Assembly: GCA_047495785.1 (NCBI GenBank)
Contig: JBLDXI010000033.1
Span: 1,302,001-1,366,000, forward strand
DNA from: Lepidodermella squamata
Taxonomy: Eukaryota; Animalia; Gastrotricha
Direction of reading: 5' to 3'
DNA: 64,000 nt
Part shown: positions 13,801 through 61,815 of the stretch, in pieces
Layout of the letters: each line of letters begins with the position of its first letter
Numbering within the stretch: position 1 is the stretch's first letter
Notes under the pieces: model-generated
Seen by the model: the letters and a program-made list of their open reading frames with translations, nothing else
What the model was told of the DNA's origin: nothing
Databases searched by the model: none
Position numbers and translations under genes: made by a program

Positions 13801-16800
13801 TTGCACCTTTGATATGCTTTTTGAAGGAAAGTTTGCAGTCAATGGTGAAGCCAAGAGTGGTCATAACTTTTGATGGTCCGATAACTGCGTCGCCGATAGT
13901 GATGGAAAAATCCGGCGCGGATGGCATAGCACATTTCAAAAGCAAAAACTGCGACTTTTTCCCATTAACTGCCAAAGAGTTGCTGCTGAGCCATGAGCAA
14001 ACACGATTCATCTCTTGCTGTAGAACTGATCGTAATTCATTGACATTTCTGCTTGAAAAGTAAATTGTGATATCGTCGGCGTATTGCTTTATTCTGCACC
14101 TAGTAACAACTGCTGACAATTCGTTAACGTAAACCGTAAACATTAGGGGTCCAAGTACGGATCCCTGTGGAACGCCGAGATTCACCGATTCGAATGAAGA
14201 CAATTCGTTGTTGACCTTAGTTGCTTGTTGGCGACCTTGAAGGTAGTTTTCTATCAGTTGCAATGCCGACGGTGATAGGCCGGCGCTACGAAAAGATTCG
14301 ATAATGCCCGCGTGGTTGAGTGTATCGAAAGCCTTCGATAAGTCGATAGAAACAGCAGCAACAACCTTGCCATTACACATAGATTGCCGCCAATCCTCAG
14401 TGAACTCAGCTACGCAAGTGTCAGTTGAGTGCTTTTCTCGGAAGCCATGCTGCGATGGCGACCAAAACTTAGAGAGATGAGCTTTTAGTTGAAAAGCTAA
14501 GCATCGTTCGAACGTTCGAGCAACCGGCGATGTGATAGAGATCGGGCGATAGTTGGCGACATCTGTTCTATTTCCTGACTTGTGAAGAGGGGTCACAATT
14601 GATGCTTTCCAATCCCTAAGAAAAACTTTTTCAGAGATTCCCATGTTGAAAAGTCTCATAAAGTGAGGCGAAAGGGTTGACTTAGCCATTTTCACGATGC
14701 ATTCCGGAACGCCATCGTAACCAGTAGTCGATTTGTAAGAAAGCTTGTCGATTGCCGTCTCAACTTCGATCAAAGACACAAATCTGAAGTCGAAGCATTG
14801 ATATCCTGTGCGACGTCTGACATAGTTGAGGCTAGTTGAGAGCGCCTTGGCGACCTTCTCACCGGCGTGCGCAAAGAAGACGTTGAATTCATTTGCTTTC
14901 ATCAATGACTTCTCCTTGTCCAGTTCTTGAAACGAACCACGAGATTTAGGTTTCGGTCGGAATTCGCCAATAACTCGCCATATTTTCCGAGGATCTCGAC
15001 CAGCTTCTTTGACTCGCTTGTAGTATTTGGCACGTCGAATCTTGCGCCGTAGTCTTTGCCGCTGGCGACGCGAGAGATTAGGATCGATAATTGGCTGCAC
15101 TCGCTTGTTTGCTCGACCAGGTTTTTTGACAATCATCGGGGCGACTTCGTTAATTGTGGCCAAAATTGCGGTTTTCAGTTTCAGCCAGTACGCCTCGCAT
15201 TCAACGGGTAAGTCATCGTCGATTTTTCCCAGTTTTGCTTTTAGGCAGCTATTCAATCGGTCTGAGTCAATATTTCGAAGATCACGAAACACGCGCACAT
15301 CCTTGACATTAGATTTCTCGCTTCCTTCGTCTTCGATTACCAAGGTTGTCCCATAGTGATCGCTGAGTCCAACCACTGTTCCCGTAGTAGCAACTTTGGA
15401 GGCTGGAATGTTAGTCCAGTAATGGTCCAAGCATTTTCCTGATGCGGGGCGCGTTACCAAGTTTTCATAGGCAGGTTGTAGTCCGAAATCGTTGAAGACC
15501 TCACCCATCGCTTCTGCTACACCCGGATTTCTGAGATTCCAGTTGAAATCACCCGATATTATATGATAGTCGGCTTCTGCAGACATACATTCGGTCAAGA
15601 ATGTTTCAACTTCGTCTGCGTCGGCCGATTTGAAAGTTTCGGGACAACTAGGCCGTCGATATATAGCTGTTACGGCCAGTTTTTTCCCTGACGGTAAAGG
15701 CGGTAAAGGTATGGACGTGCCTTTACAGTGGGCCAAAGGCGAACCGAGTGGCGATGGTGCCTTTTGCTTGTTCAAAGTTTACGGGAATTTAAGCCCGCCC
15801 GGTTGGTATCTCAACGACGTTCCAGGCAACTCATTGTCTTCGGATGAAGAAACAAGTGCATCAATCGGTGTTTGTGAAACGTTCATCCCCTCGACTATCG
15901 TGGTATGCCTTAGATTACTTCATATGTAAAGTCGCAACATGAAAGGAAAATGTGCCATCTATGATCTATGATCTATTCCAGGCTCATGCATCATGCTCGA
16001 TAATGGCTCTTTTGTTTAACAGACAGGTTATATTCGATGCGTAATGCCCTATTTCCAAGGAGCAGTGACTTGCCGGTCTAACGCGACTGGCTGTTACTTT
16101 GGCGAATATGCACATCCGCCGAATTATACGTTCGCCGACGCGGCTAGCTGTTTGAATGCCACTAAAAGGCTATTTCTTGTGACATATCTTAATGCGATAA
16201 CTCCACAACGAAGTCCGACCAACTATCGGTATTTTAACGAAGCATGTTCAATGAAAGGTGGGCTTTTGGCTACCATTAAAACGGAAGTGGAACATAATGC
16301 GGTGCGACTTTTACTCATGGATGCTTACGTTGATCTGGCCCTCATCGGGCGATCGAGTGGCTCGGCGTGGGTAGATAGTAGCCCGTTTGCGCCGCTTTCT
16401 TTGCAATGGGGACCAGGGCGCCCTACTGGATATGATTGCGCCGAATATAGATATTTTAATGCTTCAATCGACAAGCCGGCAGGTATTTACTTAAGTGACG
16501 CCCCCTGTCTCAAGTTTTGGGAAGCCGCTGTTTGTGAAACCTTCGATCCAACTTACGACACAACTCTCCAGGTGAGCTTATCACAAATGATTAGGTATTT
16601 TATTTTTATATAATTACGAGCTCCGAAAACTAGACTTCCCGCCACTTTCCGTAAAATACGAATCTAACTATAACGGATCTAAGTATTTATGAGAGATGAC
16701 AATTAAACCATTTTAGCATGCCTTTCACCTTGAATCTCTGGTCAGGCATTTCACTTTGTTGTTTTCAAAGGCCTCAAGCGTCCGCTGTGTCGTAGCATCG

Positions 16801-19800
16801 GGCGACAATGTGCGCTGCCGATCGGTATCAATCGGCTGCCTGTACAGCGAGAGAGCAGTACCCCCTGCAAATTTAGCTTTGTTCGCCAGTGTGCCTGAGT
16901 GTACCAACGCTCGGAAGCAATTTTTTGTCATTCAGTCAGCCACGCAATTGACGCGAGACCAAGCGGTTGCGAAATGCACCGAAAATAACGCGAGCATTGC
17001 TACAATCAAAACTTGGGACGAACAAGGCGAGTTTCGCCAACAACTTCGCCAGCAGTCGATTTCCTCCGTTTTTGTTGGCCTCACGCAGCCAGCCGGATCT
17101 CCATTGGGTCTGGAACGTTGGATTTGGGACGATGGAACTAGATATGAGGCATTGCCACTGCAGTGGGACAGCAGTGAACCAAGCGGAGATGGCGATTGCG
17201 CCGAATATACCAGTACATCTGTCGGTCTATACCTCGGTGATGTTTCTTGTTCGGCTGTCAAATTTTCGGTGGCCTGCGAAATATTTGTTCAGCCAGCTGT
17301 AAGTTTTTGATAATTGTAATAGCTGACTCTAAATTAACAAAATATTCAAACTGAGGATCCTAACTATATTTCGCGTTTTTAGTCAGCTTATTAATTTGTA
17401 CATGCCGCATTTCTTACTCTAGGTAGAGGCTGCATCGTCCTTTGTCCGATGTCTTGCGTGGGGAAACCCTGGGTCGGTAAGCTGCAGGAAGACCTCGTTG
17501 TTGACCTCGACACGCTGCTACTTCGGCGAGCTGTCTTTTCCATCTTCCCTGGTTTTTCCGACACAAGAAAGCTGCCAAAATGCACAAAAAACATTGTTTG
17601 TACTCGTTGATCCGAAGTTTAGCGAGTTAACAACCGTTAACAACCTTTGCCGGGCAAAGGGCGGTCAACTGGCAACAATCAAGAATCAACTGGAGAAAGA
17701 TGAACTTGGTCGTATGCTGTCAGAATTGGGCGTCGAATCAGCCTGGGTTGGTATTGCAAGTGATGCAGGTAATGCAGTGTGGATTGATGGTAGCCCCCTG
17801 GTGTTACAGTCGTCTTCGTTGCAATGGGGCCCTGGCGAGCCGAATGCCAATAATATATTTGCTCAATTTATGTTTTTCGACTCGGATGGGCAGTATTCCG
17901 CCGGTTTCTACCTGAAAAGCGCCAATATCGCAGATACATCACCGGGCATAGCTTGCGAAACCTTTGATCCAACTTATGTCGCTACCGCGATCGATGTAAG
18001 TTGTTTTATAGAACTTTTTTCATGTTGTGGTGGCTTCAATGGTGATTTGAATGATTTGAATGAAGATTGGAAGTCTTTTTGTTATTTGTTTCCTAGGCTC
18101 GTAGCGTTCGATGCGTGCCCAAGTCGTCTGGATTAGTCAAATGTCGTTCGGCTACGGCGGGATGTTACGAGAGTGAAAAAAACTTTCCAGCGGGTGTTGT
18201 CTATGCAAGCAAGGATGAATGTAACTCGGTTGTCAAGCAAATTTTCATAGTCAAATCGACGACACAGATGACGCGTGATGAAGCTGCATCGAAGTGTTTC
18301 GAAAATGGCTGGCAAATGGCATCGATCAAGACGTGGGATGAACAAGGCAAATTGAGGCAACTGCTCACTAACCAGTCAGTCACTACAGTATTCGTCGGGC
18401 TACAGAAAATAGACGGGAAGTGGAAATGGGCCGATGGTTCTGATCTCTCAGCAATTAATCTTCAGTGGGGCAACAACGAACCGAGCGGAGACGGGGAATG
18501 TGGCGAATATTTCACCTTCGGCGCCTCGTCTCCCTTGCCTGCTGGTCTGTATCTTAATGATGGAGCATGCTCGGTCACTGAATTGGCCGTTGCGTGTGAA
18601 ACTTTTGTTCTGCCCACCGCTGCGCCAGTAAGCTTTTTCCCATTCATTTTGCGATGGCTCACTAAGATTTGGGCTAGATCAACTAGATTCCTTAGTCATC
18701 GTAATTAGAACCGCGAAGAATGATTCTATAGCCCAGATTGAATCGTACACATTTCTTACCCCTTTCTGATTTTCCAGGTGGGAAGCTACGCGCGATGTGT
18801 CGGTGTTCGGAATGATGGCTTGGTCGCCTGCCGCCCGACTTCGCCTGGCTGTTACTTTGGTGAGACGAATTACGCTAGCTACGATTCGTTTGAAAGCTGT
18901 GTGGCCGCGGAGAAACGACTTTTCATCCTAGAGGGTGGTCGAACATGGCTCGACGCGAGCAATTTTTGCCAATCTGAAGGCGGCTTTTTGGCGACGATTA
19001 AAACACCAGGGGAGCGTTCAGCCATGCTCGAACTGCTCTCGTTGTGGTCGCTCGACCAGGCTTGGATTGGCTGGTATGACTCTACTTGGGTCGATGGGGC
19101 GAAATTCACGCCGTTTCCAAAGCAATTGGGGCCTAATGAGCCGAATGGTGATGGATTGTGCGGCGAATATTTCATCTATAACGCTGACACCCAGAGGAAC
19201 TACTCCGCTGGGCTTTATTTGAACGACCTCAATTGCACCTGGTCAGCGCCCGGGGCTGTTTGTGAAACATTCGGCTCATTGAGAGCTGGAGGACTTCAGG
19301 TAAATAAATAAATTATTTTTATCGCTCCATCTCAAAAGTGCTGACGAATAATGGTGCTTTCACAAATGCGTCCGACGAGCGTCCGACGTTTTCGGCGCCC
19401 GAAGTTTCGTAATAGGCGCCCGAAGTAGCGTAATAGTTGTCCGACGTTTAGATTTCCTTTCACATACGCGCGCACTTCGGCCCGCGCCCGAGGTTTAAAC
19501 AATAGCGCGTCCGACGCGGCGCGCGCACGCACAACAAAGAACGTCGGATCGGAGGCCCCCAAAACTACCGTCCGAAGTGCGTCCGAACCGAAGCTTGTAG
19601 CGCGCACTATTATTACACGCACACCAATAAACGTAAGCGCGCGCGCGGCCATTCGACTGCTTGACTGACTGTGAAACACTCAAGTCGTCTTGAATTACGA
19701 CGAGTCATGAAAATGAGTTCCAAATATACCACAAAAGCTTATAAATAAGGCCGGCAAAACCGCGCTCGGCGCGGCAAGAAAAAATTGATGATATGCAAAT

Positions 19801-22800
19801 CATGCGTCTCAATCACATAATTTTTCGATGAAATTTAGATTTTTATGATCCGCATCGCATTTCACGTCTCATTACTTAGTTGAATTCAGCATTAACGCTG
19901 AAATGGAAATTTTTTTGCCTGACCCCTGCCACTCGCATGCACGCGCGCTCAAGTGCGTGACACCCAGCAACTTCGGCGACTAAACAATAGAGACTTCGGG
20001 CGCCCGACCGCGCGCGCGCGTCCGAAGTGCCACTGATAAAGCTCTCCGACGTTTCGCTTAGCTCTACCGAAGTTTGCGAGTTGCTAGCCGAAGTTTTCAC
20101 CGTCGGATGCATTTGTGAAAGCACCATAAGGAAAATGTTTATGTTACCCGTATTTGATCATTTTTGACGCCGGATAACAACAATATCCGAGTTTCATCGG
20201 TGGACAGCGATGGATATTAGTCCTTCAGGCCAATATTCATCGCGCTATCCACCTATGATATCAAACCGGATATTGAATATTATCTCGCCACGCATTCAAG
20301 AATCGGATTATAATAAATGGCCTTCGGGCAGATATTTTCCGCTATCCGCTTCAAAGCTCGCAGATATTGTATAGTATTCTTTATATTCTTTCTAGTACTC
20401 GTTCGTGCGATGCGAGAATCCAGCTTCGGGAGAGGTATTATGCTCGCTGCAGCAATTGGGATGCATTATCAATGGATATACCCGGCAATTCCCGAATGCA
20501 ATCTTTACGACCTTGAAAACATGTGAAAATGTCAAGAAGGTGTTCTCCGTGTTGAAATTCTCACAACCAAAGACGCAAGCCGAGGCCCAGTCTGAGTGCT
20601 CTGGCGTTTCCGGTCGACTGGCGACAATAAAATCGTGGGATGAACAAGGCGAGATGCGAGCCGTGCTCGCTCGAGAGGCAATTACCTCTGCCTGGGTTGG
20701 TCTTGTGGGTATCACGAACAATGCGGGCCAAAATTACGGCTGGGTTGATGGTTCTAATTTCACTGCCTTACCCTTGCAATGGGGCTCACAAGAGCCTAGT
20801 AACAATCAGAATTGTGGCATATACGATTTCTACAACTCGACTTTAACCGGTCTATATCCGGCTGGTCACTACCTCAATGACGTATCTTGCGACGTCCTTG
20901 TTTCCAATGCTGTGTGCGAAACTTACGTCCGACTCACTGTTACAGCGTCGTTTGTAAGTTATTTTTTCATATCTAATGGATTACCAAATGACCAAATGAA
21001 TTAATTTTATTTAACGTCCTCCGTAGGCATGAAAATGTGATTTTTGACACTTCTGAAGATTTAGCATCAAGATCATCGCTTGAAAATTCGAAATTTCTGA
21101 AATATAATTTTGTGCTAAAAGTGTGTTTGTAACAGACTGGCTACGTTCGCTGCATCGATATCAGTGGATCAGTTCGTTGCCGCTTGAATACCACAGGATG
21201 CTACTTTGGCGAGCAAGCTTATCCACCGTCAACCTATTACGAAACTAGAAGCGATTGTCTTTCCGCTGTGAAGACAATTTTTGTCGTGGACACTCCTCAA
21301 TACCGTACTTGGGAAGACGCAAAAGCTTTGTGCGCCGCCAAAGGTGCCCAGCTAGCTACGGTCAAGACAGCGTCTGATCAAAGTGAAGTCCGTGCTTTGC
21401 TGAAAGCGTGGAGTCTAGCTTCAGCTTGGATTGGCATACGATTCTCAAAATGGATAGATGGCAGTATTTTTCAAAATCAGCCTAATCAGGTTATCGCTTT
21501 ACTATTCTTTCTTTTCTTTCGAACCTCACGATTTGAAGACAGATTTTGAAGCAGAAATTGTTACTATTATTATACTACTATTAAAAAGTGATGTATCATT
21601 TGGTGAAAATCTTTGTTTGAAATTTTCTAACAATTGTAACAATTGCTAACTAACAGATTTGGTGGGGTCCCAATGAGCCGGATAACGGTGGCGCGTGTGG
21701 CGAGTACAGAGCGTACACGCGTACTGAGAATTGGCTATTCAACTATTACATGAATGACGCAGATTGCAATGGCCGCTCTCAAGGTGCTTTATGCGAAATC
21801 TATGATCCGACCTATCAGCGTCCTTTACCTCCAGTGAGTTGGCCATTTATTTTCAGTTGTAATGGTCATAATATTCAATGTTCACTGCAACTTATTTTTC
21901 GCCCTTTTCCATTTTTCAACTTATTTTCTGCTGTGATTTCTTATTAATTTTCCAATTTAAAAAGAATGGCTACAAACGCTGCGTCAATCTAGTCGGAGAG
22001 GCTACCTGTGTATCGAACTACGTCGGATGTCCAATTTTTACCGTCCCTCTCAGCCATTTGTTCAATTCGGCTGAAAGCTGCGCAAACGCTGTCAAGACGA
22101 TGTTTTTCATACCAACGCAACAAGGCACTGTCGACTGGAATAGAGCTTTTGACCTGTGCACGGGCGAAGGCGGGCAGCTGGCGAACATCAAAGCGCCTGT
22201 TGATCAAATTGCGATACGCCGGCTATTGTCAGCCTGGCGAATCAAGAGTGCGTGGGTTGGCTGGTCAAACTCAAAATGGGCCGATGGTAGCAACTTTACA
22301 CCTCTGGTCCTGCAATGGGCTCCTGATGAGCCTTCAAATTCGGGAAATTGTGCCCAGTACGCTCGTTTCTACATCTCCATCAAAGTAGCGGAGTACCCTG
22401 TATATTTCCTGGCAAACTTGGCTTGTGATGCTAAGCTGACCGATGGAGTTGTCTGCGAAACATACGACCCATCGTACGCCTTTTTCCCTCCACCGGTAAG
22501 GATTTCACAGGAATTGCTTTAAGCTAAAATAACTACTCCGAACTGGCATCTAATTGACTTTTCAGGAAGGCTTCGCACGATGTCTAACAACTTCGAGCGG
22601 GTCAACTACGTGTCGATCAACGCTAACTGGGTGCCAGTCAAATGGAGAAGAACGCTACCCAGATGACTTGACTTTCCCGACACTGCAGCGCTGCGCGAAC
22701 GCCTCGAAGCAGTTTATCTTGATTACGCAGCGACTAACATGGAACGCAGCGAAAACGTTCTGTTCAGATCAGGGCGGTATGAAGCTGGCAACTGCAAAAA

Positions 22801-33711: not shown

Positions 33712-36219
33712 ATGCTGCCAGCAGAAAATCGCCGATACTTTTTGCTCTTGCTTAGTCAAATTTTACTTGGTTTAGAAGCCCTGAAACCCAAAGTTCTGTC
33801 AATGCTGGCTCTAATTCCTATTAACGAAGAGGAAATTCATGGCGGAATCGGTTGCAAAATGGCAATGCAAGTTGCTGTTAATATTGTGAATGCCCGGTCA
33901 GACGTTTTATCGGATTATCATCTTGATGTAATATATGCTGACGAAGGCGAGGATGTCCCAGCCTACCAAGGCAACGCCCTACGAAATTTTTTCAAATTTC
34001 TAGAAAATTCCACTCTGAAAAACTTGACCACTAGCCCTATCATCGTTGGCACTATCAGTCCGAACGGGTGTCAGTTCATAGGAGCTTTCGCTCATCTGTT
34101 CAACATGGTCGAAATAGGTCTGGGTTGCAACCTACCAATGTACTCTGCAAACAGAAAGCAGTTCGCAAATTTCTATCGTAGTGCCATATCCGACGAAGTA
34201 ACTCTCTATCCCTTGGTAAAATTTATCAAGGAAGTTGGTAACTGGACGAAAGTTGCCATTTTATCAAGCTCCCTTGTCGACTATGACGATATCATGTCAG
34301 CGCATACTTACAGAGTGCTAACCAGCGAGGGTGTTAAAGTCGCTTGGTTTAACAAATTTCCGGCAATTGACGATAATTTCGCTTCTTTGAAATCAGCCAA
34401 TGTTCGAATCATAGTGATTTTACTACTTCAGCTAGATGTCCTCTTCGCGACTCTGTGTCAGTGGTACAGAGCCGACATAACCCCACAATCAGGTTTTGTA
34501 TTCATATTCAGAGGAAGTACTGTTTTAAACGAAAATGGCCTGATGGATGCTCTGAGCCCGATATGCCCTAAAGCCATCGTCATGTCACAGCTTCAATCAG
34601 CTTTCTTCATCGGAACGATCGGAATACCGAATTCTATCGGAGATTCAGTAACGTCATTGGGTTACGATATTGTCACTTTTGATCAAGAATTCGCCAATCT
34701 GGTTCGAAACGCGACTCGCACTCCACCTCAGTTTTTAAAGGGCTACGCCGTCAGAACGCGTTGTCATGATACTATGCTCCAAGCTATTTTAACTCTTGAT
34801 TCCGCAGAAATTAAACTTAGAAAAGTTAACATGACCCTTGGGGACTATCAAAAATCACCAAAGCTTATCTCAAATGTTGTGAATGAAAGTATGGCGGCGA
34901 TCAATTTCACAGGCATAAGAGGTACAGGTCCAATGCGTTACTCCGAACGTTTGGAATTCGAGAACGAACAGCAGCAAATCAAACAATGGTTCCCGGGAAC
35001 TAATGGCTATGGAACTTTAATCTACAAAGCTTACAAGTTAGAGCCATGGCCCTATAACAGCAGCTCGTTCATATTTCATAAGTCGAGCTCGCCTGAATGG
35101 ATTTTCACCAATTCAGACGCGCCACCCCGAGACTCATGGAATATGAAATCAGCCATTGTCACACATCAGCCGTGGCTTCAATATTTTGTCATTGCCACCT
35201 CTACAATGTTGTCCGTTACTCAGTTTGGGATCATTGGCAGGGTAATATGGTTGTCGAAGATAGAATCAAAACCAATGTTGGCCAATGGAATTCAAGGTCT
35301 GCCACTTGGATTGCTATTCTGCAATTTCGCCGCTATTACCTACTCGCAATCAACTTCGTGCAGCTTGCGATTAGTTCTCCTCTTACTTGGAATTGCGCTG
35401 ATTGTCGGAAGCATCTTCTTCCCTCTTTTGGGCATGTTTCGGGGAAGCAGGCGTCGTATTGCTGGCACGCATTTCATCCGCATCCATGCATCGATCAAGA
35501 AGCGGAAACGGGGGCAAACAACAACCGCTAGTGAATCTACCTCTCCCTACCTAGGCCTGTCTGAAGTTCAGTCTAAATACGATGATAAGAAGACACATAA
35601 TCATTCATCCTTAGCGACTAGTCAGCATCATGTTGATTCTCAACAAAATGCTGAAGAACTCGAGAGATGGTCACGAAAACTCAGCCCATATTGCCAACTT
35701 ATTTATTTCGCTGTTAATTCAGTTGTATTAGCAAGTTGGTGCATTGCGAGTCCGCCTGAGTTAAATCTGAAGGATTTTGCCGCTAAGCCTATCTATGACA
35801 TGTTAACAGATACATTCATCTACCTGAAAGTTCTATCCTGTGAATCACCTGAGCAAATTCAGTGGATAGGAGGTATCTTTGCCATTCATAACTTATTACT
35901 CCTGCTTTCTGTTGCATTGGGCTATGAACTGAGACATTGGAAGCCACAGAGTCAACGAGCTTTCTCGAATTTCCAGCAATTTCGTATCGCTGCTATCAAT
36001 ACTTTGTTCGTTCTGGTGGCAGTTTTCATTATATTAGTGATTTTCAATGGCAAGCCTTTGGTTCAGGACCAAGTGATAGCGCTGTCACTACTGGTGAACT
36101 CACTGATTCTAACAGTCATCATGGTGGTTGTAGGCAAGCATCTGAAGCCAATAGTTGAACCTATCGCATCATCAGCCATCGATACTGGGAGGCATGGAAA
36201 TACGGGCCGAGATTTATGA
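33712..36219 (+). CDS. GABA-B-like class C GPCR, paralog 3 (intronless, more divergent)
   Basis: Single 835-aa ORF with signal peptide, VFT motifs (VNARSDVLSDYHL, FANFYR, WTKVAIL, ANVRII) and 7TM. Confidence 0.87.
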   Translation: MLPAENRRYFLLLLSQILLGLEALKPKVLSMLALIPINEEEIHGGIGCKMAMQVAVNIVNARSDVLSDYHLDVIYADEGEDVPAYQGNALRNFFKFLENSTLKNLTTSPIIVGTISPNGCQFIGAFAHLFNMVEIGLGCNLPMYSANRKQFANFYRSAISDEVTLYPLVKFIKEVGNWTKVAILSSSLVDYDDIMSAHTYRVLTSEGVKVAWFNKFPAIDDNFASLKSANVRIIVILLLQLDVLFATLCQWYRADITPQSGFVFIFRGSTVLNENGLMDALSPICPKAIVMSQLQSAFFIGTIGIPNSIGDSVTSLGYDIVTFDQEFANLVRNATRTPPQFLKGYAVRTRCHDTMLQAILTLDSAEIKLRKVNMTLGDYQKSPKLISNVVNESMAAINFTGIRGTGPMRYSERLEFENEQQQIKQWFPGTNGYGTLIYKAYKLEPWPYNSSSFIFHKSSSPEWIFTNSDAPPRDSWNMKSAIVTHQPWLQYFVIATSTMLSVTQFGIIGRVIWLSKIESKPMLANGIQGLPLGLLFCNFAAITYSQSTSCSLRLVLLLLGIALIVGSIFFPLLGMFRGSRRRIAGTHFIRIHASIKKRKRGQTTTASESTSPYLGLSEVQSKYDDKKTHNHSSLATSQHHVDSQQNAEELERWSRKLSPYCQLIYFAVNSVVLASWCIASPPELNLKDFAAKPIYDMLTDTFIYLKVLSCESPEQIQWIGGIFAIHNLLLLLSVALGYELRHWKPQSQRAFSNFQQFRIAAINTLFVLVAVFIILVIFNGKPLVQDQVIALSLLVNSLILTVIMVVVGKHLKPIVEPIASSAIDTGRHGNTGRDL

Positions 36220-49052: not shown

Positions 49053-51242
49053 GCTGTCGGAAATCTGCTGCCCTACTTTTTGTTAGGACCCGAGGTGAGC
49101 CAAAATAATTTTGCATGTCTACTATTATTATTCCTACCCATTATAAAATCAGACTCGTCGCCGGTCGATGAATCGGCGGCCGATGGTGATAACAGACTGC
49201 TGCTTTCACCGCCTAAAAACAGCCTAGAGCCAGTTATTGGCGAATCGCCGTTGTTGTTTTCTGCATCGGCACCGAAGTACCAGCGCGTTGGCGCAGCACC
49301 GCCGCCGTCAGCGTCGTCGTGCAGAGACATGACCACATGCGACGGGGGCACGTATCGCTCATCGTATTGGGCGCCCATTTTTATTGTGCGTTTTTCCAAG
49401 TCGCCAGCAGCAGCCACAGCAATAAAGCGCGCACTTGAAGCGCGGTGTGTGTTGTTTTGCTGTGCGTATTATTATTACCACGTCAAGCCTTTTTTCGTGA
49501 TGACGATAAGTGAATGACTCATCAATCAGGCGAGCGATCACAAATGCAGAGAGAGCGCCTTAATGATTTGCAAACAAGTATAATCCGGTATAATGCAACT
49601 AGAAACAATAAGCACAATATATAAAATCCATACAAAATCCTAAGGTGGACGTAAGAAATTTTTCTTCGCGTATAAAAATTTTGCAAAAATTCGTAGTCAC
49701 AGGAAATTGCTTCAACGGAGCTAATACTAAATTTCGCGAACTATATTTATATTCATGTAGCTCCCTGCAATTTAGCTTTAGAAATCTAAAATTAAAATAA
49801 TTGTAGATGTCCTGGACTGCCAGGCCCGTATGTTTCCGAAAAATTTGCCATATCACGCAATAATATGGATGAAAAAAATATTAGCTATAATATAGATGTT
49901 GCGGCAGTTGATACATGATTTCGCTATTAAATCAATCGCTCGTACGCGATGGTTTTTGGGCTCCGTGCTGGGATTTGAGCAGCTTTACGCACCAGTTTTA
50001 TCGACAAGGGATGAACGCGAGTGTTGAAAAAAATCCATAAAAATAAGCGCGATTGCTTAACATACTATAGGTGGCGATTTGTAATAACGCATCGCAAAAA
50101 ATGTGGTTAATTGATTCCTCGTTGAATATACAAGATCGTGTATCAAGTCAACTTCAAAAAATGAGCTGATTTTTCTGAAACGATGCTATCGCTGCTTCAT
50201 TCCCACAGTTATTTCGAAGAATAAAAAACTAATTTTTAATAAACCGAGAAGTATAGCCATTTGATTGAGATTAAGAAACTAGTTGATTAATTCACGAAAA
50301 ACAGCATGTAAAATGACGAGTTTGACCTCTTCCTCTCGAGTTCGAAAGAAAGATGAGTTTAGCAATAGGCAAGTTATTACCCATCTTTATTTCTGTGTAT
50401 TATTTCTAGCGCTATCAAACAAATGATAGTGGCGAGCGGAGAGGGATAGGAAAAAAAAACCACCGCCGAAGCGATGATAATAGCTTCATCGTGCGAGTGC
50501 GCATCACGATTTGTGGGAACTCGGCAGACACGTAAACATCGAATATAGTATAGATGGGTTAAAGTCCTTCATGCTGCTACGAAGCATAGAGATGAATAGG
50601 TAGGCATAAAGTCAGCACGAACTAGCCCGCGGAAAAAATACTTTGGCTTATTTGATTTATTGATTTTATCGACGCGAAACAAGACCAAATAATAATCATC
50701 GTACTAAAATAATAACCGAGCTAGGATAAGTACCCGGAAGTACTGCGTTTACCCTATAGCGTTATTGCTTCATTTTATTTACCCAAGAATTTCAATCAAA
50801 CGAGAAATGACAAGTTATTGCCGGGCTATAGGTGATGATCATTCGATTAGTTGAACGCAGCGTGGGTTATGCGTGAAAATGCGGACTTCGCCCCCATCGC
50901 AAGTTCTGCGATATAAATGACAATGCACAGGCGGCAATGGCGTGTGGGTTTTAGGTCGCATCTAATTGCCGTCTGTCGCGATACATGACAGCGTGTGACT
51001 GCGATGCCGCCTTGAGGTCAATCAAGTGTGAAATAATTTTTATTTTATAATCCATTGGGTATACAAAAAATATCGCTTTTCACTTACATTAACTGATATT
51101 CTTCAGAGATTTTCCCGCCACGATAGCAAAAAAAATCCGATTTAATTAAAAATATTTATTCTCCGAGGTTTAAAAGCGAAAATCTTAACTCAACAATTTT
51201 AAGGTGGATTAAAATGAAAATATTTGAGATCGAGACTGGACA

Positions 51243-53022
51243 TTAATATCGTGGCGTGTAAAAGCCTTGTTTGAAAGTGAACTGTTTGGTTTTTCGAGCC
51301 GATTTCGGAGATATTTCCGGTGAATCCATTGCAAGTTTCGCATCTGATTCGAGTAGCGATACAGACCCACCGTATGTGGCTATTTCAGTTCCTATTCGCT
51401 TTTGTTCAGCTTCCAACAGCCGTAATTGCTCGGCGTCGTAGGACTCGGCATCCTGAAACACTTGACATCGCTTCATACATTGATGCTCGTCCGGCTTGTC
51501 GCGGGTTCTATAGCAGCTGCAGAAATGCTCGGTCGCATCAATCTGAGATGGGGGACCGATATTAATAAAATAAACTTAAAATTTAAAATTCTCACGTTCG
51601 GCTCCCGGCAAATGTAGCACATGCTTGTATAGCACTTGGGGCACGTCACGAAATTCGAACTTCCATTGTTCTGCCAAAGCTCCGTGTTGCATTTCGAACA
51701 TTTTCGCTTCACAATCGCATTCTTCTTCTCCTCCCTAAATAAATTGTAAAAAAGTTCAAAATTTCAAAAATTTCAAAATTTTACCATTCTAGCTGAAGCT
51801 TAGCCTCTTGAACACGTTTGCAATTTTGACAATCGGTTTCTTTGATGTCAGACCAAGCCGCTTGGCATTTATGGCAAAATGCGTACCAACACCTGGCGAT
51901 CGGGCATCGAGTTGCCCCGGGCCTAGCCAGTTCGTGTTTGTCCGCAATCCAGTCGTAGGCGCACTGTGGACACCGGCGATGCAGCTTCCGGTCGTCATTT
52001 GTAAGCTCATGAGCAGCTTCCAGTGACGTGAAATACCGCTTTGTGTTGACGTCCAGCATACGTTCGAATTCGTAAAGATGGCCTGGACTGACTTTTGTCG
52101 CGATTTCCTGCCTCAGGAAAATTGACTCGCAAGTCGGGCATGGCAGGTAATATTTCTGCGCAATACATTTTTCAATAAAAATTAATTTAAATTGTTTGAA
52201 AATTTATTAGTTAATTAAAATTTAATTTTAATAATTTTAATAATTTAATTACATTTTAATTTAATTTAAGCTAATTTATATAATTTTGATGAAGTTGAAT
52301 TTTTGAAGAAACTCTGCTACAACATTAGTAATTTTGTCTACTCATATTTTGAAATTAAAAACTTACTCCTCCTGTGCCGTTAACAGTGCAATGTTTCGTC
52401 CAACGAGCCATGCAATTTTTGCAAAAGAGATGATCGCCTCGGCAAGGTATCATTTCATTGATATCAAACAGATCGAAACAGAGCATGCATTGCGTTTTAA
52501 CGAGTCGCTCGTCGTAGTCTCTGAATAACTTCACCATTCGATGACATTTCGGGCAGTAATACACCGTACATCCTGGCACGAGATCGCTTGAAATCGCCGG
52601 CAAAAAACAGGATGGGCATCGTTTGAAATAGGGCGTGATATTTCGAGGCGCGAAACGGCGGTTGAGTCGAATCAAAAAATCCATCAACGAATCGCGATTT
52701 GTCGAGGCGGCTATGGTTAGTAATTTCGGATCGACCTTAGACGTGCTGATTTTCAAAGGCTGGCCGCGGAATTGCGTCTGGTCAAGCGAGACCGCCTTGT
52801 CGTAGCTATCTTGCTTTCGAAATTCGACGATCGCGTAGCTAAGATACAGCTAATGTATTGTTTTTATAAGGACGATGAGTGTACTCACCCTAATGACTGG
52901 CCAGTTTTCGGGTCCCGCTGGAGTTTGACGCGCGGTGCTTCGCCGCATTTTGAGCCGAAGTGCAGGCTCAGTTCTTGATCTGACGTTCCTTTTTCGAAAT
53001 TACCGACGAGAAGGCTTAACAT
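51243..53022 (-). CDS. RRM (PABPN1-like) fused to an RNF216/TRIAD3-like RBR (RING1-IBR-RING2) module; 5 exons
   Basis: LLVGNF...ELSLHF..CG...RV...D..TG.SLG|YAIVEF...AVSLD...FRG..LKI (RRM). CMLC..C...H.FC..C...C..C (RING1); RRCPQC...CP..RC...FC..C...W (IBR). CSKC...TCPKC...MCYIC..|..EHFC...C..RC..F.D...D (RING2 plus RNF216-type tail). May extend upstream past the acceptor at 53052. Confidence 0.8.
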
Positions 53023-53293: not shown

Positions 53294-53436
53294 CCTTATT
53301 TGAGTTGCGCAGCTATTACGCGAGTAATTCGATTATAAAACGATTTTTCTCAAAGAAATTTATCACACTTTTTAAATCATCTTGTCTATAGTTTATCTCA
53401 ACACATTTTTCACATCAATATTTTCGATTGATTTTA

Positions 53437-56400
53437 ATGTTTGATTTTATATCAAACCCGCCGATCCTTTCGGCGCTGTTGGTGCTGTTATCGGCGTCAG
53501 ATTTGGTGTCCAGTCAGGGCTTTGAGGCTTACTCGAGTCGAAACCAAACCTGCTGTACGGTCGATGTTGTCTACGTCATAGACAACGCGTACTACAACTC
53601 GAGCAATGAAACGTTCCCAGGCGCTGCGATTTTCAACGCCCCAGAAACATCGTGCATGGACCTGCGGTTTGCTTCGGTCGAGTTCGGAAGCGACGCCAAT
53701 GTGATATACTGGCTGAGCAACTTCACTAGCACCGAAGAAAGTCTCGCGGCTATTCAGAATTACACCCTGGGACCTTATCTTGGGCCGGATCACAACGTCT
53801 CCGCAGCCTATGATCTCGTCAATTCAACGGTAAGCCAAATTTTTTGCATAAATTATTAATTATTAATTTTAATTTTAAATTGATTAATATTTAATTTTAA
53901 TTTTAATATTTTTTTGAAAATTCACAAATTTTTCGAAATAAAAAAATTAATTAAATTGCTAGTTAACTTTTTTAATTAATTTGAAAATTTTTTTTTTTCA
54001 GGTGCTCATTGTGAGTAATGGCAGGCGATCGAATGCCTCAGCCGCCGTTATCCTGTTCACTGGCGCCGATCTCGGCAACCAAACCAGCATGGCCCTGCTC
54101 GAATTTCTCAATTCGACCGCACACTTGCTGGTCGTCGCTTCAGGCAGCAACTACTCGAACGAAACCTACCTCAACTACGTCACATCGCCTGACTACCTAT
54201 TCAACTACGAAAACTTGACCGCCAGCAACCAGACGAATCAAATTCTCCGCGAGTTTTGCCCGAACGCTTTCGGAGCGCCAACCTGCTGCAAATCCGACGT
54301 TGTTTTCGTCATCGACCGCGCGTTCCTCGACACGCTGAACGAAACTGAGCGAGCCAACATTCTACAGCGCAGCTTCGAGAGTCAAAACCTGCAATGCCCG
54401 GACTTGAAGATCGCCATCATTGAATTCGGCTCGATCGCGACAGTTTTCGCCAATTTCCAGAATATGACTACGCCGAATGAAACAATTTCCAACTTTTTGG
54501 CCGAGGAGATGACGAGCAACTACAGCCTAGGAAGCGGGCACAACCTTCACCTAATGCCTCATCTTATCGAAAGCAAGGTTAGAAAAAATAAATTTAATTT
54601 TACTTTAAATTCGAAAAATTGATAAAAAAATTAAAATTAAAAAAATGTAAAAATAATTATTAAAATTTGAAAATTAAAATTATTAAAGTGAAATTGAAAA
54701 ATTTGATTGGAGGATTCAATTTTTTAATTTTTAATTTTCTAAAAACTTAAAAAAATTAATTTCCAAATTTTTCCAGGTTTTGAAACAGCAACTTGGCCAT
54801 CGAAGGGATGCTAAGCCTGTGATTGTTGTAGTCACCGGTGCCGATCCTTCGTACCCTGCCCTTGCCGAATGGCGATTCCGGCAACTCGAACGCCACACTG
54901 GAGCTGTGGTTCTGGTCGAAGCAATTGGCTCGAACTACACTGAAAATTACTTGCTACCGATCGCCTCAAGCCCCGAAGACTTCTACGTCCTTGGTGGCAA
55001 TTCGACCGACTTCAACAACACCGAAGTTTGGCAATCAGTCTGCAAGGTCTGGCCCCAACCCGCCACCCCACCGGTTCCGAGCTTCTGCTGCGATACCGAT
55101 TTAGTCTACATGATCGACCAGGCCTACTTCTCAACGCTGAACCAATCAGACCAGCAAATGATTTTCAATCAAATTTTCAGCGATGACCTTCTGATTTGCC
55201 CTAATGTCAATGTCGCCATCGTTGAATTCGGGTCAAATTACACGATTGTCAAGTATTTCAACGAAACTGGTGGCTATGCGCCTTACGACTACCTGGTCGA
55301 CTATTCGATTTCGAACAACACCCAGGGCGATGAGCATAACGAAGAGTTGGTCTACCCTATCGTTCGAGATGTTTTGCTGTCGCCGGATTTCGGCCGCAGG
55401 TCTAACGCATCGGCTGTCGTGTTGCTGGTAACCGGGGCTGATCCGACCAACCAGAACGCATCTGCTATCGAGGCGATGCTAACTGGCGCGAACGCGACTA
55501 TGAAGGTGTTGGCAATCGGCAATAACTACACCGAGATGTCCCTCCGCGATTTGGCGAGTACCTACGCCGATTTCGTGCCCTACGACCTGCCGATGATGCA
55601 TGACAACGAAACCATGATGATGCCGTTCAACACAGCCGAAATCTACGGCGACATCTGCCCGTCTACCGTTACCTACTGCTGTTTGTCTGACATCGTTTTC
55701 CTGATTGATCGAGCTTACTTCGCGAACAATACCAACCAAACTGAGCAGTTGACGCAGTTGTTCACCGATAACCGCTTGGCGTGCCCGGACATTCGTGTGG
55801 CAATCGTTGAGTTCGGCTCGGTGGCGAATGTGGTCATGTACCTGAATGAGTTCAATACGCCGGAGGATTTGGTCGTTTTCTTGCAGAACTACACCTTGGG
55901 ACCGGATCTTGGCAACGAGCACAACGCGGCAGCAGCTTATGCCCTCGCTGCTTCCGATGTAAGTCATTTTGAGAATTTAATTTAATTTAATTTAAAAATA
56001 ATGAAAATCAAATTTTAAATTTTAAAATTTAAATTAAAAAAATAATTAAAATCAAATTTGTGCCGGGAAAAAATAATAAATATTTTTCAAGATTTTTTTA
56101 GATTTTCCAACATAAATATTTTTCCTTTGGAATATTTCAGCTGAATTTTAATTTCGCCGTTTTCCGAATTTCCAATTTTTCTAAATTTCTTTCCAATTTT
56201 TCGAACTAGGTTCTCACGTATGACAACGGTCAACGGCCAGCTGCGACTCCCTATGTCGTTTTGGTAACTGGTGCCGAGTTGACGAACCTTACCGAAGCCA
56301 TCAGTGAAGCCTCGGCTTTGAAGCAAAACAACACCATTCTACTGGCGAACATCATTGGCGACATTTCAAACACCTCGTCCCTTGAACCCCTGGTTTCGCT

Positions 56401-59400
56401 GCCGGAATACATTTTCACTGCAAACAACACGAATTCGACCGCTGCAAACGCTACTCTGTTCGATGTTCTGTGCACGGAAGTTTTGCCCCCGATCCCGACG
56501 AACGCCACGTGTTGCCCGGCTGACATTGTCGTTCTGATCGATCGCGCCTATTTTGCGAACCAAACCAACCAAACTGAAGTCCTGGGCCAGATTTTCGACC
56601 TGCGGAACCCGCATTGCCCCGAGATTCATGTTGCAATCATCGAATACGGCTCGAATGCGAGTGTCATTTTGTACCTGAACAACTTCACGGCGAGTTCGGG
56701 TAACATGACTTTGGGTACAGCATTGCGAAACTACACCCTAGGCCCTGATCTTGGACCTGACCACAATGCCAACATGGCCTACGCCCTAGCCAACAGCCAG
56801 GTAAATAATTCAAATTAATTGAAATAATGGAAAATTGATTTCAATCGTCTCCAGGTTTTGACCGAAGAAAATGGATTCCGACCGAACGCTACGACCGTTA
56901 TTGTCCTAGCCACTGGAATCGAACCGACGATGCTGAATGAAACTATTTATGAAGCCTTGCAGTTGAAGCAAAACGGCGCCCTTCTCGCCGTCAGCGCGTT
57001 CGGCGATGCTTACAACCAATCGTCACTCGCAGCCCTTGCTTCGTCGCCTGAGTACTTCTTCCCAGTGAGTGAAAATCAAACCGAATCAGTTGCTAACCAA
57101 TTTTTGCGATCAATTTGCGCTGCGAATACCACCTACATCGCCCCGTCAAACAACTCGTCGACTACAACCCCCACGGGCTCGGAGACTACAACGCCTACCG
57201 GCTCGATGACTACGACCACAAGCAGGCGGCGGAGACACCGGCAGCCGATTTGCTTCGGCTGGATTTGCTTCCGGGACGATGAAGATCCTTCGATGAACAC
57301 GACCTGCTGCGCCTCTGACCTCATTTTCGTCATCGATCGCAATTACTTCCTGCAAAATTCGTCCAGTGGCGAATCGATGGGCAACGAAACAATGGCTGGC
57401 AATCGAACTATGCTGCTACAACAACTGTTCAACAACTCGAAATTGGCTTGCCCCGATGTTCAAGTCGCGATTGTCGAGTACGGCTCGAATGCGACAGTTA
57501 TCGCCTACCTGAACAATTTCACTAATGCGGTTATGATGGAGGGCGGTGAAGACAATTCGACCAACGCGACAATGTCAACTGAGCTTATCGATTTCCTTCA
57601 AAATTACACGACCAGTCTGGGCAGTATGGACCTTGGGCCACTGCAAAATCTCGATTTGGCTTATCTTCTTGTTCAATCTGAAGTTTGAATTTTTTCCATT
57701 TTTCCCTTCTTTAATTAATTGTTCGAAGTGTTCTTTCGTACACATTTATCTAAGGCGAAATTACCTTTCATATTAGGGTTAGGACTTGGTTGAGGTTCAA
57801 GGTTAAGGTCGGGATTGGGTTCAGATCGATTTTCAGTTTTTCCAAAGTTCGATTTTAGGTTCCCTGAACTTCACCCAATAGATACCAATAGCTTCACCGT
57901 TTGGGTTAGGGTTAGGGTTAGGGCTTCGATAGGGTTCAGGGTAAAGGTTAGGGTTGGGTTTAGGTTGATTTTCGAGTTTTTCCAAAGTTCTATTTTGGGG
58001 TCCTTGAACTTCACCCAATAGCTTTTCCAAGCGAAAGGAAATTTGCTAGGTTTCCTGAACCCCATTTTAAAAACCGAAAACTAGCTGGCATTTCCTTAAC
58101 GTTTCCAGCTCGAATTAATTTTATGTTTAATTATAGATTGCACCCTAATTTCTTTCAAATCCTAGGTTTTGTCGCCTGAATACGGTCGCCGGTCAAATGT
58201 CACGGCTTTTGTCATCTTACTGACTGGCTCAGACCCTACAAACGATACTGCGGCTCAAAATGCTTCGCTGGCGCTTCAACCGAATGCAACCATGGTTGTT
58301 CAAGCGTTCGGCAACAACTACACCCAACCGCTGCTCGAATCTCTGGCTACGTCACCTAGCTATTTCTTCGTAATGAATGAAACCTCGTTCGAAAATATGA
58401 CAGCAACAAACGAGACATCTCAATCACTTTTCGACATTGTTTGCGCTTCAATGGCCCAGAACGAAACTGCATCTCAAAACCAAACCGCCTCGAATCAAAC
58501 CTGCCCGGTTATCGATATCGTTCTGCTGGTCGATACTGCCTATTTCTTGCAAAATGCGTCGGCACTGAACGCGTCGGCGGGTGGCGGAAACATCACGAAC
58601 AACTGGTCGAACGAAACTCAAACTCCGTTAGTCTTCCTGAACCAGCTGCTCAACAACCCGCTGTTCGAATGTGCGACAATCCAAGTTGCGATCATCGAAT
58701 TCGGCTCGTCAGCTAGCCCTGTGTTGTACCTGAGCAATTTCACGGCAAACGCGACCAGTCCACAATCGATTGAACGAGCTGCTGGTGACATATTCCAGTC
58801 TCTCGCCGATTATTTGAGAAACTACACCTCGGGTCTTAATAACCTTGGTCCGCAGCATAATGTGGCGCAAGCGTTGCAAACTGCAGCTCAGTCAGTCTTG
58901 AATTGCTGCGGTCGCCGAGTCGACGTCCCGGCTTCTATTTTGCTGATAACCGGCGCTGATCCTTCGAATCAAACTGCGGCGGAAAGCGAGGCGAATTCGC
59001 TGAAGAATGACACAACGATCATCGTGATTGGGGTGGGTGACAATTTCACGCAAAGTCTCCTGGAACCTCTGGCTACGTCGTCGCAATTCTTCCTGCCTGT
59101 CTTGCAAACTGAAAGCCCGGAAGTTGCGATTGAACAAATTGCGGCTTTGATCGCCGCTGCGGCTGAAAATGCGACCGCAGCTAATGCTACTTCGACTACC
59201 AACGAAACTACTACAGCGACACCTGCTTTCAATGAAACAACGACTGCCTCTGGTTTTAATGAAACTACAACTGCCACCGGTTTCAACGAAACTACAACTG
59301 CCTCTGGCTTCAACGAAACTACAACTGCCACAGGTTTCAACGAGACTACGACGGCAACTGGTTTCAATGAAACTACGACAGCAACTGGATTCAATGAGAC

Positions 59401-61815
59401 AACTACAGCTACCGGTTTCAATGAAACTACAACTGCTGCAGGATTCAACGAGACTACAACAGCAACTGGATTCAATGAAACTACCACTACCTCGGGTTTC
59501 AATGAAACTACGACAGCAACTGGATTCAATGAAACTACCACTGCTACTGGTTTCAATGAAACAACTACTGCGGGTGGCTTTAACGAGACTACAGCGCCTT
59601 CGTTCAATGAAACTACAACTGTCCCCAGTTTCAACGAGACTACGCCTGCCTTCAACGAAACTACAACACCGTCTTTCAATGTCACAACGCCTGGGTTCAA
59701 TGAAACTACCACGGCGATGGGTGGCAATATGACTACGCCAGCGCCAGGTACTGGCAATCAAACAATCGAAGCGTCACAGTTCTGCTTCACCTGCCAGGGT
59801 CGGCACAATCGACGAAGCTTGTTTGCAAACCCGAACGACTGCCACTCATTTTACCAGGTAAAATCGCGATCAAAATCGATGATTCAACCAATTTTTTATT
59901 TTTCGAATTTTGTAAGAAAATTTTGAAATTTTCATTGAAATTTTCAACTTTTTAAAAATAAATTAAAATCTAAAAATAAATTAAAATTAAAATTTTTTTT
60001 AATTTTTTTAATTTTCTAATCAATTTTTTATTTCAGTGCTTCTTCTTCGGCTCTGCAACTGCTTTCGGAATTTTCCATCAATGCCCGGCCGGAACATTTT
60101 TCAACGCCGAAACTTTGATTTGCCAACCCGAAGGTCCAACGCCTTGCCAAGACGAGTGCCAGGATACCAGCATGAAGTGTTGGGCTCAACCCGGCAACTG
60201 CGCTAGGTTCTACGTCTGCGCGAACGGCGCCTCATACGGCCAGTGCTGCCCGCCGGAAACCAGTTTCAACCCGGAACTTTGCACCTGTGAGGACGACGTG
60301 TTCTGCACGGATAACTGCACATCAGGCAACCCGCAGACACCCATGGTCGCCGCGACAGCCCTCCCGCCGCCCACTGTCAACGGTTCAGTCTGTCAGGATA
60401 GCTACGGCCAGTCGTTCCAAGCCGTGCCAGGCCGGCCTGATCTGTTCCAGCAAATCGACCGCAGACCCCGCCGCCGGCCTCGCGTCACCACCCAGACCTG
60501 CCCTCTCGGCACCCAATTCTCCCTGCAAGAATGCGCCTGCACCACCGATCCGACTGTTGTTATCATCCCACCTGAATTCGGAGGCGAACCGCGTGCAACT
60601 CAACCGGCTAATCAGTGCTTGCTGTACCTGCCATTCGACGGCAATTTCAGCGACGCTTCGATTTACAAATTCTCAACCTTCCCCTTCGGCGATGTTGCGA
60701 TCAATACCGGCAGCCCGGCTGTTGGGTCAGGTTCGATGTACGTCGACAACGGCCGGCTTGAAATTCCGGGCTTGGAAGCTGTTGATTTCAGAAACACAGC
60801 AACCTGGTGCTTCTTCTTCAGGTGGGTTCCAGAAAATTGATCCTAAGATTTAAAATTAAATTGAATTTTAAATTTTAAATTCAAATTCAAATTTAATAAT
60901 TTGAATAATTTGAACAATTTATTAAATTTTATTTTTATTTTCCAGGTGTGATGACCCTAGCGGCTGTACTATTGATTCTGGTCTTCTTTCGAACAACCGA
61001 GACACCTCCGCATCTCGTTTCTCGATAATTATAGCTACTCTGGCTAACAACAGTGTCGTAGCCAGGCTGATGTTCCGCGACGGCAGCTCGCAGCCTATTG
61101 AAGTTGTCGGCAGTTTGTCGGAACAAGGTGCTCAAATGAACAATGAGACCACCACGCCGTCTGGTATGAACGAAACCACAACCGGTGGCGATCGGCACCA
61201 CGGGCTCAACGAGACTACGACAGCTGGCGGTTCCGAGACGACAGCTGGCGGTTTCGAGACTACAACTGCCGGTGGCCAAAATGAAACAACTACAGCTCAA
61301 GGGTTCAATGAAACAACTACGGCTCAAGGTTCCAACGAGACAACGACTGCTCAAGGCTTCAATGAGACCACTACAGCTACTGGTTTCAATGGGACATCGA
61401 GTGGCAATGAAACTTCAACTTCGCCCATGGATTCGGTTACTCAAGCTTTCTTGGGTGCGGCGCCGCCAACTGTTTCGATGACGACTGGAACTTGGCAACA
61501 CGTTTGTGTCGTCATGACTCAAACCCGGACTGTTCTTTACCTCAACGGGGTATGAAACTATTTTTTCTATTTTTCCTATTTAGTTTTCGATTTGTTTCTT
61601 AGAACCGAGTTCAAGATGTTCGTAGCGGCGGTTCGCTTATGATTTCGCAATGTCCTTACGTTCTCGGAACTGATCAGGCCTACGGCAATTTCCGCGGCTC
61701 TATCGACGAAGTGCTGATCTGCGAACGAGCTTTCACCAACACCGATGTTCAGGCGCACATGAGCGGCGACCGGGCGACCCTCGCATCGCGCGGCTTTTTC
61801 CCCGCTCAAGCGTGA
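53437..61815 (+). CDS. Secreted Pif/BMSP-like matrix protein: 7 VWA domains, NETTT mucin repeats, ~3 chitin-binding (ChtBD2-like) domains, C-terminal LamG/ConA-like domain; multi-exon
   Basis: Signal peptide; seven C(C)..D.V..[I/V]D.[A/N]Y / .AI.E[F/Y]GS.A / R......L.TG repeats. ANPNDCHSFYQC...CPAGTFFN...C and similar domains. CLLYLPFDGNF.D, TWQHVCVV...LYLNG and FRGSIDEVLIC (LamG). Confidence 0.85.
57773..58021. repeat. Intronic element with degenerate TTAGGG arrays and a duplicated ~44-bp block
   Basis: ttagggttagg at 57773 and gggttagggttagggttaggg at 57903. ttttccaaagttc.atttt.gg..cc.tgaacttcacccaatag occurs at ~57838 and ~57977. Confidence 0.65.
59200..59712 (+). repeat. Coding tandem repeat (mostly 27 bp; GFNETTTA[T/S])
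   Basis: About 19 units in the 58169 ORF. A second block lies at ~61140-61415. Confidence 0.9.

Follow-up and report, generated by a model that had tools for sequence, protein, structure and literature searches.

Does the gene between 53022 and 51243 join an RNA recognition motif (RRM) and a RING1-IBR-RING2 (RBR) module in one protein, and if so, can this protein still work as a ubiquitin ligase that is guided by RNA? The DNA comes from Lepidodermella squamata (Gastrotricha; assembly GCA_047495785.1, contig JBLDXI010000033.1, positions 1,302,001-1,366,000 of the forward strand), and we refer to the whole analysed stretch of 64,000 nt as the window. A first, sequence-only reading had proposed a PABPN1-like RRM fused to an RNF216-like RBR ubiquitin-ligase module, and from this an RNA- or poly(A)-guided protein of the ubiquitin system. 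We find that the RRM-RBR gene is real, expressed and maintained; the protein, to judge from its sequence, probably belongs to a known enzyme family, as a non-catalytic or atypical member.

The gene occupies 53022..51243 of the minus strand, in five exons separated by four GT..AG introns. A local script that joined the exons gave a spliced frame open over 1416 nt, equivalent to 471 codons and a stop; the joined exons were used for this frame test and for the classification of variants, and all similarity searches were carried out exon by exon. The protein of 471 residues contains, in this order, the RRM, a short linker, a CxxC...CxxC zinc ribbon, RING1-IBR-RING2, and a Cys/His-containing and acidic tail. 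Exon 1 (52889..53022) begins with the ATG at 53022, and its translation runs from M-L-S-LLVGNF, with beta1/RNP2 of the RRM (LLVGNF), to GQSL at the end of the first RRM half; the exon ends in phase 2. We place the start codon at 53022 because there is an in-frame stop upstream at 53055-53053, and because a relative on the metagenome contig L001 has its Met at the same place. Intron 1 (52839..52888; 50 nt, GTGAGT..TTAG) interrupts the RRM just upstream of RNP1, and exon 2 (52367..52838) opens with YAIVEF; this exon holds the second RRM half (52837-52751), a linker, the zinc ribbon (52618-52544) and most of RING1 (from 52489). After the AT-rich intron 2 (52156..52366; 211 nt), exon 3 (51785..52155) adds the last zinc pair of RING1, CPTC (to 52129), a linker, and an IBR-like Cys cluster at 51975-51817, with its spacing judged by eye. 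Intron 3 (51735..51784; 50 nt) precedes the RING2 (Rcat) scaffold in exon 4 (51596..51734), which is followed by intron 4 (51543..51595; 53 nt) and by exon 5 (51243..51542) with the end of RING2, EHFC (to 51519), a Cys/His cluster (to 51465), an acidic helix-like stretch, the tail, and the TAA stop codon at 51245-51243. No paralogues of the gene were found within the 64-kb window.

Support for this gene model comes from contigs of an independent run, X1, which is labelled only "RNA?", compared with run X2, which is DNA. X1 contigs skip exactly 52839-52888, 52156-52366, 51735-51784 and 51543-51595, all of which read CT..AC on the plus strand and hence GT..AG on the gene strand; the coverage in X1 matches the exons, with zero depth in intron 2 and in both flanks. 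None of the four exon joints was seen in the DNA run X2. Given the exon-only coverage and the exact joints, together with their absence from X2, we take X1 as transcript evidence. The joint between exons 2 and 3 (52367 to 52155) is spanned by one X1 contig of 373 letters with at least 131 letters on either side, and exon 4 lies in a contig of 307 letters, flanked there by 87 letters from exon 3 and 82 from exon 5. The joint between exons 1 and 2 (52838->52889) is seen in one X1 contig with 22 letters on its short side, while a second contig that stops at 52889 carries 8 loose letters identical to the first 8 bases of exon 2. Exon 5 is covered by X1 contigs; at the other end they extend only to ~52961, so that the first ~60 coding bases are uncovered. 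The intron at ~52839-52888 that had been postulated to separate the RRM halves is thus exact to the base (52888..52839) and is skipped in X1, and the X1 joints link all exons: one mRNA carries both the RRM and the RBR part. The fusion is also independent of any splicing argument, since the second RRM half and RING1 share the open exon 2, whose frame does run on without a stop into the C3HC4 RING1, as had been proposed.

Two contigs at the 3' side of the gene deserve mention in their own right. At 51592-51750, an X2 DNA contig seems to skip 157 bases, including the whole of exon 4 with RING2. The probable cause is a misalignment or, on the other haplotype, an indel in an intron, because the short side has only 21 letters and both introns start with similar AT-rich repeats; an allele that lacks exon 4 is a further conceivable cause. 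At 51138-51244, one X1 contig fuses the coding end (51244 and above) with an inverted copy of 51138-51222 and then runs into 22 A; it is either an assembly chimera in the 3' UTR, or it represents a convergent polyadenylated RNA ending at 51222. Because of this contig, the 3' end of the gene as placed here is provisional. An AATAAA on the gene strand at 51155..51160 is a likely poly(A) signal, and X1 depth ends near 51138.

The surrounding window is animal DNA with short introns, in which the other long ORFs encode LINE reverse transcriptases, a class-C GPCR and VWA domains. At 53428-53859 and 54780-59926 on the plus strand, a gene with a signal-peptide-like N-terminus starts ~400 bp from the RRM-RBR gene, in head-to-head orientation, and ORFs downstream carry VWA domains. 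A single ATG ORF of 835 residues at 33712-36219 (plus strand) matches ANF_receptor and 7tm_3, and is apparently an intron-poor class-C GPCR gene. LINE-type reverse transcriptase ORFs (RVT_1) are located at 13244-15775 (minus strand), where there is also an endonuclease-type match, and at 7728-9290 (plus strand). The ORF sets at 820-4243 and 17498-21004 (plus strand), ~16.8 kb apart, have equal lengths (197, 177 and 199 aa), suggesting that the left end of the window contains a large tandem duplication.

The gene is not only transcribed but also under strong purifying selection, and is maintained. Compared with the second haplotype or strain present in X1 and X2, the window shows 30 exonic differences, 28 of them synonymous and 2 non-synonymous, against a background of ~304 synonymous and ~1109 non-synonymous sites. 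Relatives are very few. HMMER with exon 2 against 1.84 billion representative proteins returned one true relative, P0001 (E 2e-32), which sits on the metagenome contig L001 (1396 bp). The contig ends after the first bases of exon 3, and the comparison covers the RRM, the zinc ribbon and RING1. Exon 1 shares 58% identity and has its Met in the corresponding place; the intron of L001 (777..828, 52 nt) has the same place and phase as intron 1; and exon 2 is 44% identical, with every ligand of the zinc ribbon and of RING1 kept. Since start, intron position and phase, and domain order are all shared, the front-end architecture of RRM, zinc ribbon and RING1 is, as judged from this pair of sequences, conserved across species. 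Word-index protein searches with exons 2 and 3 gave no match, in a length window that leaves out full-length relatives; metagenome scans, based on the exon-2 alignment in one case and on a degenerate pattern of the invariant peptide HFGSKCGEAPRV in the other, gave no second orthologue. One candidate, P0002 (1033 residues with repeated Cys-containing units), was rejected as a composition-driven match. Another protein, P0003, has 158 aa and contains an RNF216-like RING1 and, after a very short interval, a RING2 with the catalytic Cys kept; this protein may be a fragment, or else a minimal form of RBR-like protein.

We then ask what kind of RRM this is. Pfam RRM_1 matches exon 1 over profile positions 1-38 (19.7 bits, E 7.8e-4) and exon 2 over positions 41-70 (16.2 bits, E 0.0097); the halves were scored apart, exon by exon, and each is just below the cut-off of 20.7 bits, with a plain sum of ~36 bits. 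The two ranges are contiguous halves that together make the domain a member of the profile as a whole. Searched singly against all solved structures, the RRM halves have ePABP2 and PABPN1 at or near the top. With two-sequence profiles of each half, the PABPN1/ePABP2 chains 3ucg, 3b4d and 2jwn take ranks 1-3 of the whole PDB, with E between 0.0012 and 0.0028 for the first half and from 1.3e-6 to 0.0057 for the second. As both half-profiles rank these chains 1-3, the "PABPN1-like" assignment made from the letters alone was right.

Whether this RRM also binds RNA in the usual way is a different matter. RNP2 reads L-L-V-G-N-F here and V-L-V-R-N-F in L001, while RNP1 reads L-G-Y-A-I-V-E-F here and L-G-S-A-I-L-H-F in L001. 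Measured against the canonical RNP1/RNP2 consensus, one of the three stacking aromatics is kept here (the RNP1 Tyr in LGYAIVEF) and none of the three in L001; here, Leu stands in place of the RNP2 aromatic and Ile in place of one of those in RNP1. Canonical RNA binding by the RRM therefore appears doubtful, since the RNA-stacking aromatics are poorly kept, although the one RNP1 aromatic that is still present counts against dismissing RNA binding. The idea of guidance by RNA or poly(A) is weakened by the replacement of most of the RNP1/RNP2 aromatics, and because of it "poly(A)-guided" must be regarded as unproven.

The second half of the protein belongs with RNF216. RING1 (residues 117-150 of exon 2) is of the C3HC4 type (zf-C3HC4 E 0.0017, 18.6 bits, cut-off 21), with the ligands C-x2-C-x11-C-x3-H-x2-C-x2-C ... 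C-x2-C, which are the same in L001; its best solved match is RING1 of RNF216 (E 2.8e-5). RING2 in exon 4 matches Pfam IBR with E 2.4e-4 and 21.5 bits (cut-off 24.3, for an exon of 46 residues), and its best solved match is again RNF216, with the RING2 chains 7m4n and 8eb0 (E 3e-4). Among solved structures, RNF216 chains rank first for both RINGs, and the next RBR matches, HOIL-1/RBCK1, have E >0.1; the RNF216-like nature of the module is thereby borne out. The IBR between the RINGs is less clear: exon 3 matches IBR_1 with E 0.67 and the IBR of RNF31 with E 0.33, both of which are weak, and the Cys spacing is compatible by eye. Ahead of RING1 there is an extra CxxC...CxxC zinc ribbon, which is conserved in L001 and to which the start of the RNF216 IBR aligns weakly; in a single comparison it matches the gene's own IBR exon with E 0.038, which is no more than suggestive of an internal duplication of zinc ribbon and IBR. 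A tail of RNF216 type had also been claimed, and here the evidence does not follow: exon 5, searched whole or with its first 45 residues, gave no RNF216 match in the PDB and nothing significant in Pfam, so that the likeness to the RNF216 extension of helix and zinc finger after RING2 is by eye only and has no statistical support. ESM Atlas features for exon 2 were uninformative (best score 0.77), and an AlphaFold2 model of exon 2 from a 2-row alignment, with a mean pLDDT of 46.9, was unusable.

The decisive residue for the function of the module is in RING2. RBR ligases are defined by a cysteine relay, in which an active-site Cys in RING2 accepts ubiquitin from the E2; here, this Cys is absent. 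In the alignment to 7m4n and 8eb0, where the crystallised chains carry C688A, the residue under C688 of RNF216 is a Ser, in the local sequence N-N-G-S-S-N-F-V-T-C. An ungapped alignment to RING2 of P0003 (E-G-T-C-N-L-M-T-C) gives the same result, with the second Ser under the Cys and the six flanking zinc cysteines in register. The two adjacent serines are encoded by AGT (51661-51659) and TCG (51658-51656), the latter at the active-site position, with no differing letter in X1 or X2. C688 is the active site of RNF216 (PMC9834252). The zinc scaffold of RING2 is intact despite the Ser; however, because Ser replaces the catalytic cysteine, a working RBR ligase is unlikely, and the ligase activity originally supposed for this protein loses much of its basis. 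Since the RBR enzyme class fails on its defining Cys, we call the protein "RNF216-like" and not an RNF216 ligase. From its sequence, the gene is best filed as a lineage-specific paralogue in the RNF216 family, to which a PABPN1-type RRM would have been added and from which the catalytic cysteine would have been lost.

We suggest, with a probability of roughly 0.55, that the protein acts as a non-catalytic scaffold or regulator, whose RBR core would serve to bind ubiquitin or E2~Ub, with the RRM binding an RNP or protein partner. The Ser at the active site would most likely block the normal thioester relay from E2 to E3 to substrate, while RING1 and RING2 could still dock E2~ubiquitin or ubiquitin chains. 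The RRM-fold domain might tether the protein to RNA or, as we consider more likely, to a partner within the nuclear poly(A) machinery, be it a protein or an RNP; we favour such a partner because the RNP motifs are degenerate. With its intact zinc scaffold and Ser active site, such a protein would be a natural counterpart of the Cys-to-Ser trap mutants made in the laboratory, and it could reveal what an RBR core that is unable to pass on ubiquitin is used for, be it the binding of E2~Ub or of chains, the regulation of active paralogues, or oxyester chemistry.

Of the alternatives to a non-catalytic scaffold, the one closest to the original proposal is an active RBR E3 ligase whose RRM would bind RNA or poly(A) and so direct the enzyme to its substrates. 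It would account for the PABPN1-type RRM, the intact zinc ligands of RING1 and RING2 and the strong purifying selection, and RNA-binding E3 ligases are an established class (PMC5707401); we nonetheless consider it unlikely, as there is no cysteine at or beside the active-site position, and not one canonical stacking aromatic is conserved between the protein and L001.

Still more improbable, in our view, is a serine-based RBR, in which Ser352 would carry ubiquitin as an oxyester, so that the protein would be a slow ligase, or else a ubiquitin acceptor or sensor with the modification itself as the signal. This would fit the two adjacent serines in an otherwise conserved RING2, and the fact that the gene is under selection, but no natural RBR that uses Ser as its nucleophile is known to us. 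Engineered Cys-to-Ser RBRs do hold ubiquitin as a stable oxyester: Parkin C431S takes it up in this way, and the same is stated for HHARI and HOIP (PMC3549971). A Ser nucleophile in RING2 could thus, by analogy, in principle be loaded with ubiquitin. On the other hand, oxyesters discharge poorly to lysine, and polyubiquitination of the substrate is abolished in C431S Parkin (PMC3549971). In its most far-reaching form, which we regard as a long shot, the protein would be a natural RRM-tethered RBR with Ser as ubiquitin acceptor, either as a long-lived oxyester sensor on an RNP or with transfer to hydroxyls of a partner; if true, a serine-accepting RBR would be a new catalytic flavour in the RBR family.

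The last possibility, a young decaying duplicate (an expressed pseudogene) or a mis-joined model of two genes, is very improbable and largely refuted: the catalytic residue is lost, the RNP motifs have diverged and there is one relative among 1.84 billion representative proteins, yet the frame of 471 codons is open, synonymous differences outnumber non-synonymous ones by 28:2, the orthologue on L001 (58% and 44% identity in exons 1 and 2) keeps all cysteines of RING1 and of the zinc ribbon, one RRM half shares an exon with RING1, and every junction is present in RNA-like contigs.

How, then, does the non-catalytic scaffold that we favour compare with known systems? Proteins of the PABPN1/Pab2 family have an RRM that is flanked by a coiled-coil N-terminal segment and an Arg-rich C-terminal domain. 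The RRM described here is of the same subtype as that of PABPN1, ePABP2 and Pab2, and shares the motifs HF..CG...RV and LD...FRG; unlike in that family, Met is directly ahead of beta1 and zinc modules follow the RRM, with neither the N-terminal coiled coil nor the Arg-rich C-terminal domain, and the canonical RNP aromatics are not kept.

RNF216/TRIAD3, a human RBR E3 (PDB 7M4M, 7M4N, 8EB0), is the best solved match for both RINGs and has the same order RING1-IBR-RING2; by eye, RING2 also ends alike, in HFC, and is succeeded by a further Cys cluster and by an acidic stretch of helix-like character. The protein described here differs in that C688 is a Ser, in the extra zinc ribbon ahead of RING1, in a tail without detectable homology, and in its N-terminus, which is an RRM, with the SIM and ubiquitin-binding-type modules absent. 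In the domain scheme of RNF216, the N-terminal part is made up of SIM and CUE or UBA-type modules, and there is no RRM (PMC9834252), in agreement with what the sequence-only reading had said of this family. In a literature search, RNF216, an RNA recognition motif and an RBR were not found together, and the combination of a PABPN1-type RRM with an RNF216 core was not found described for RNF216. RBR ligases have reportedly been linked to RNA metabolism, by Lucas et al. in 2006, and an ancient subfamily of helicase RBR proteins exists (PMC2904391). The concept of RNA-binding ubiquitin ligases as an established class of RNA-binding E3s covers HECT, RING and RBR domains, and in the human list the RRM is among the RNA-binding domain families of RING-type ligases (PMC5707401). 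The protein differs from these ligases in that its ligase module has no nucleophile; like them (RING with RRM, KH or CCCH, of the CNOT4 and MEX3 types) and like the helicase-RBR proteins, it combines a domain of RNA-binding type with a RING-class module.
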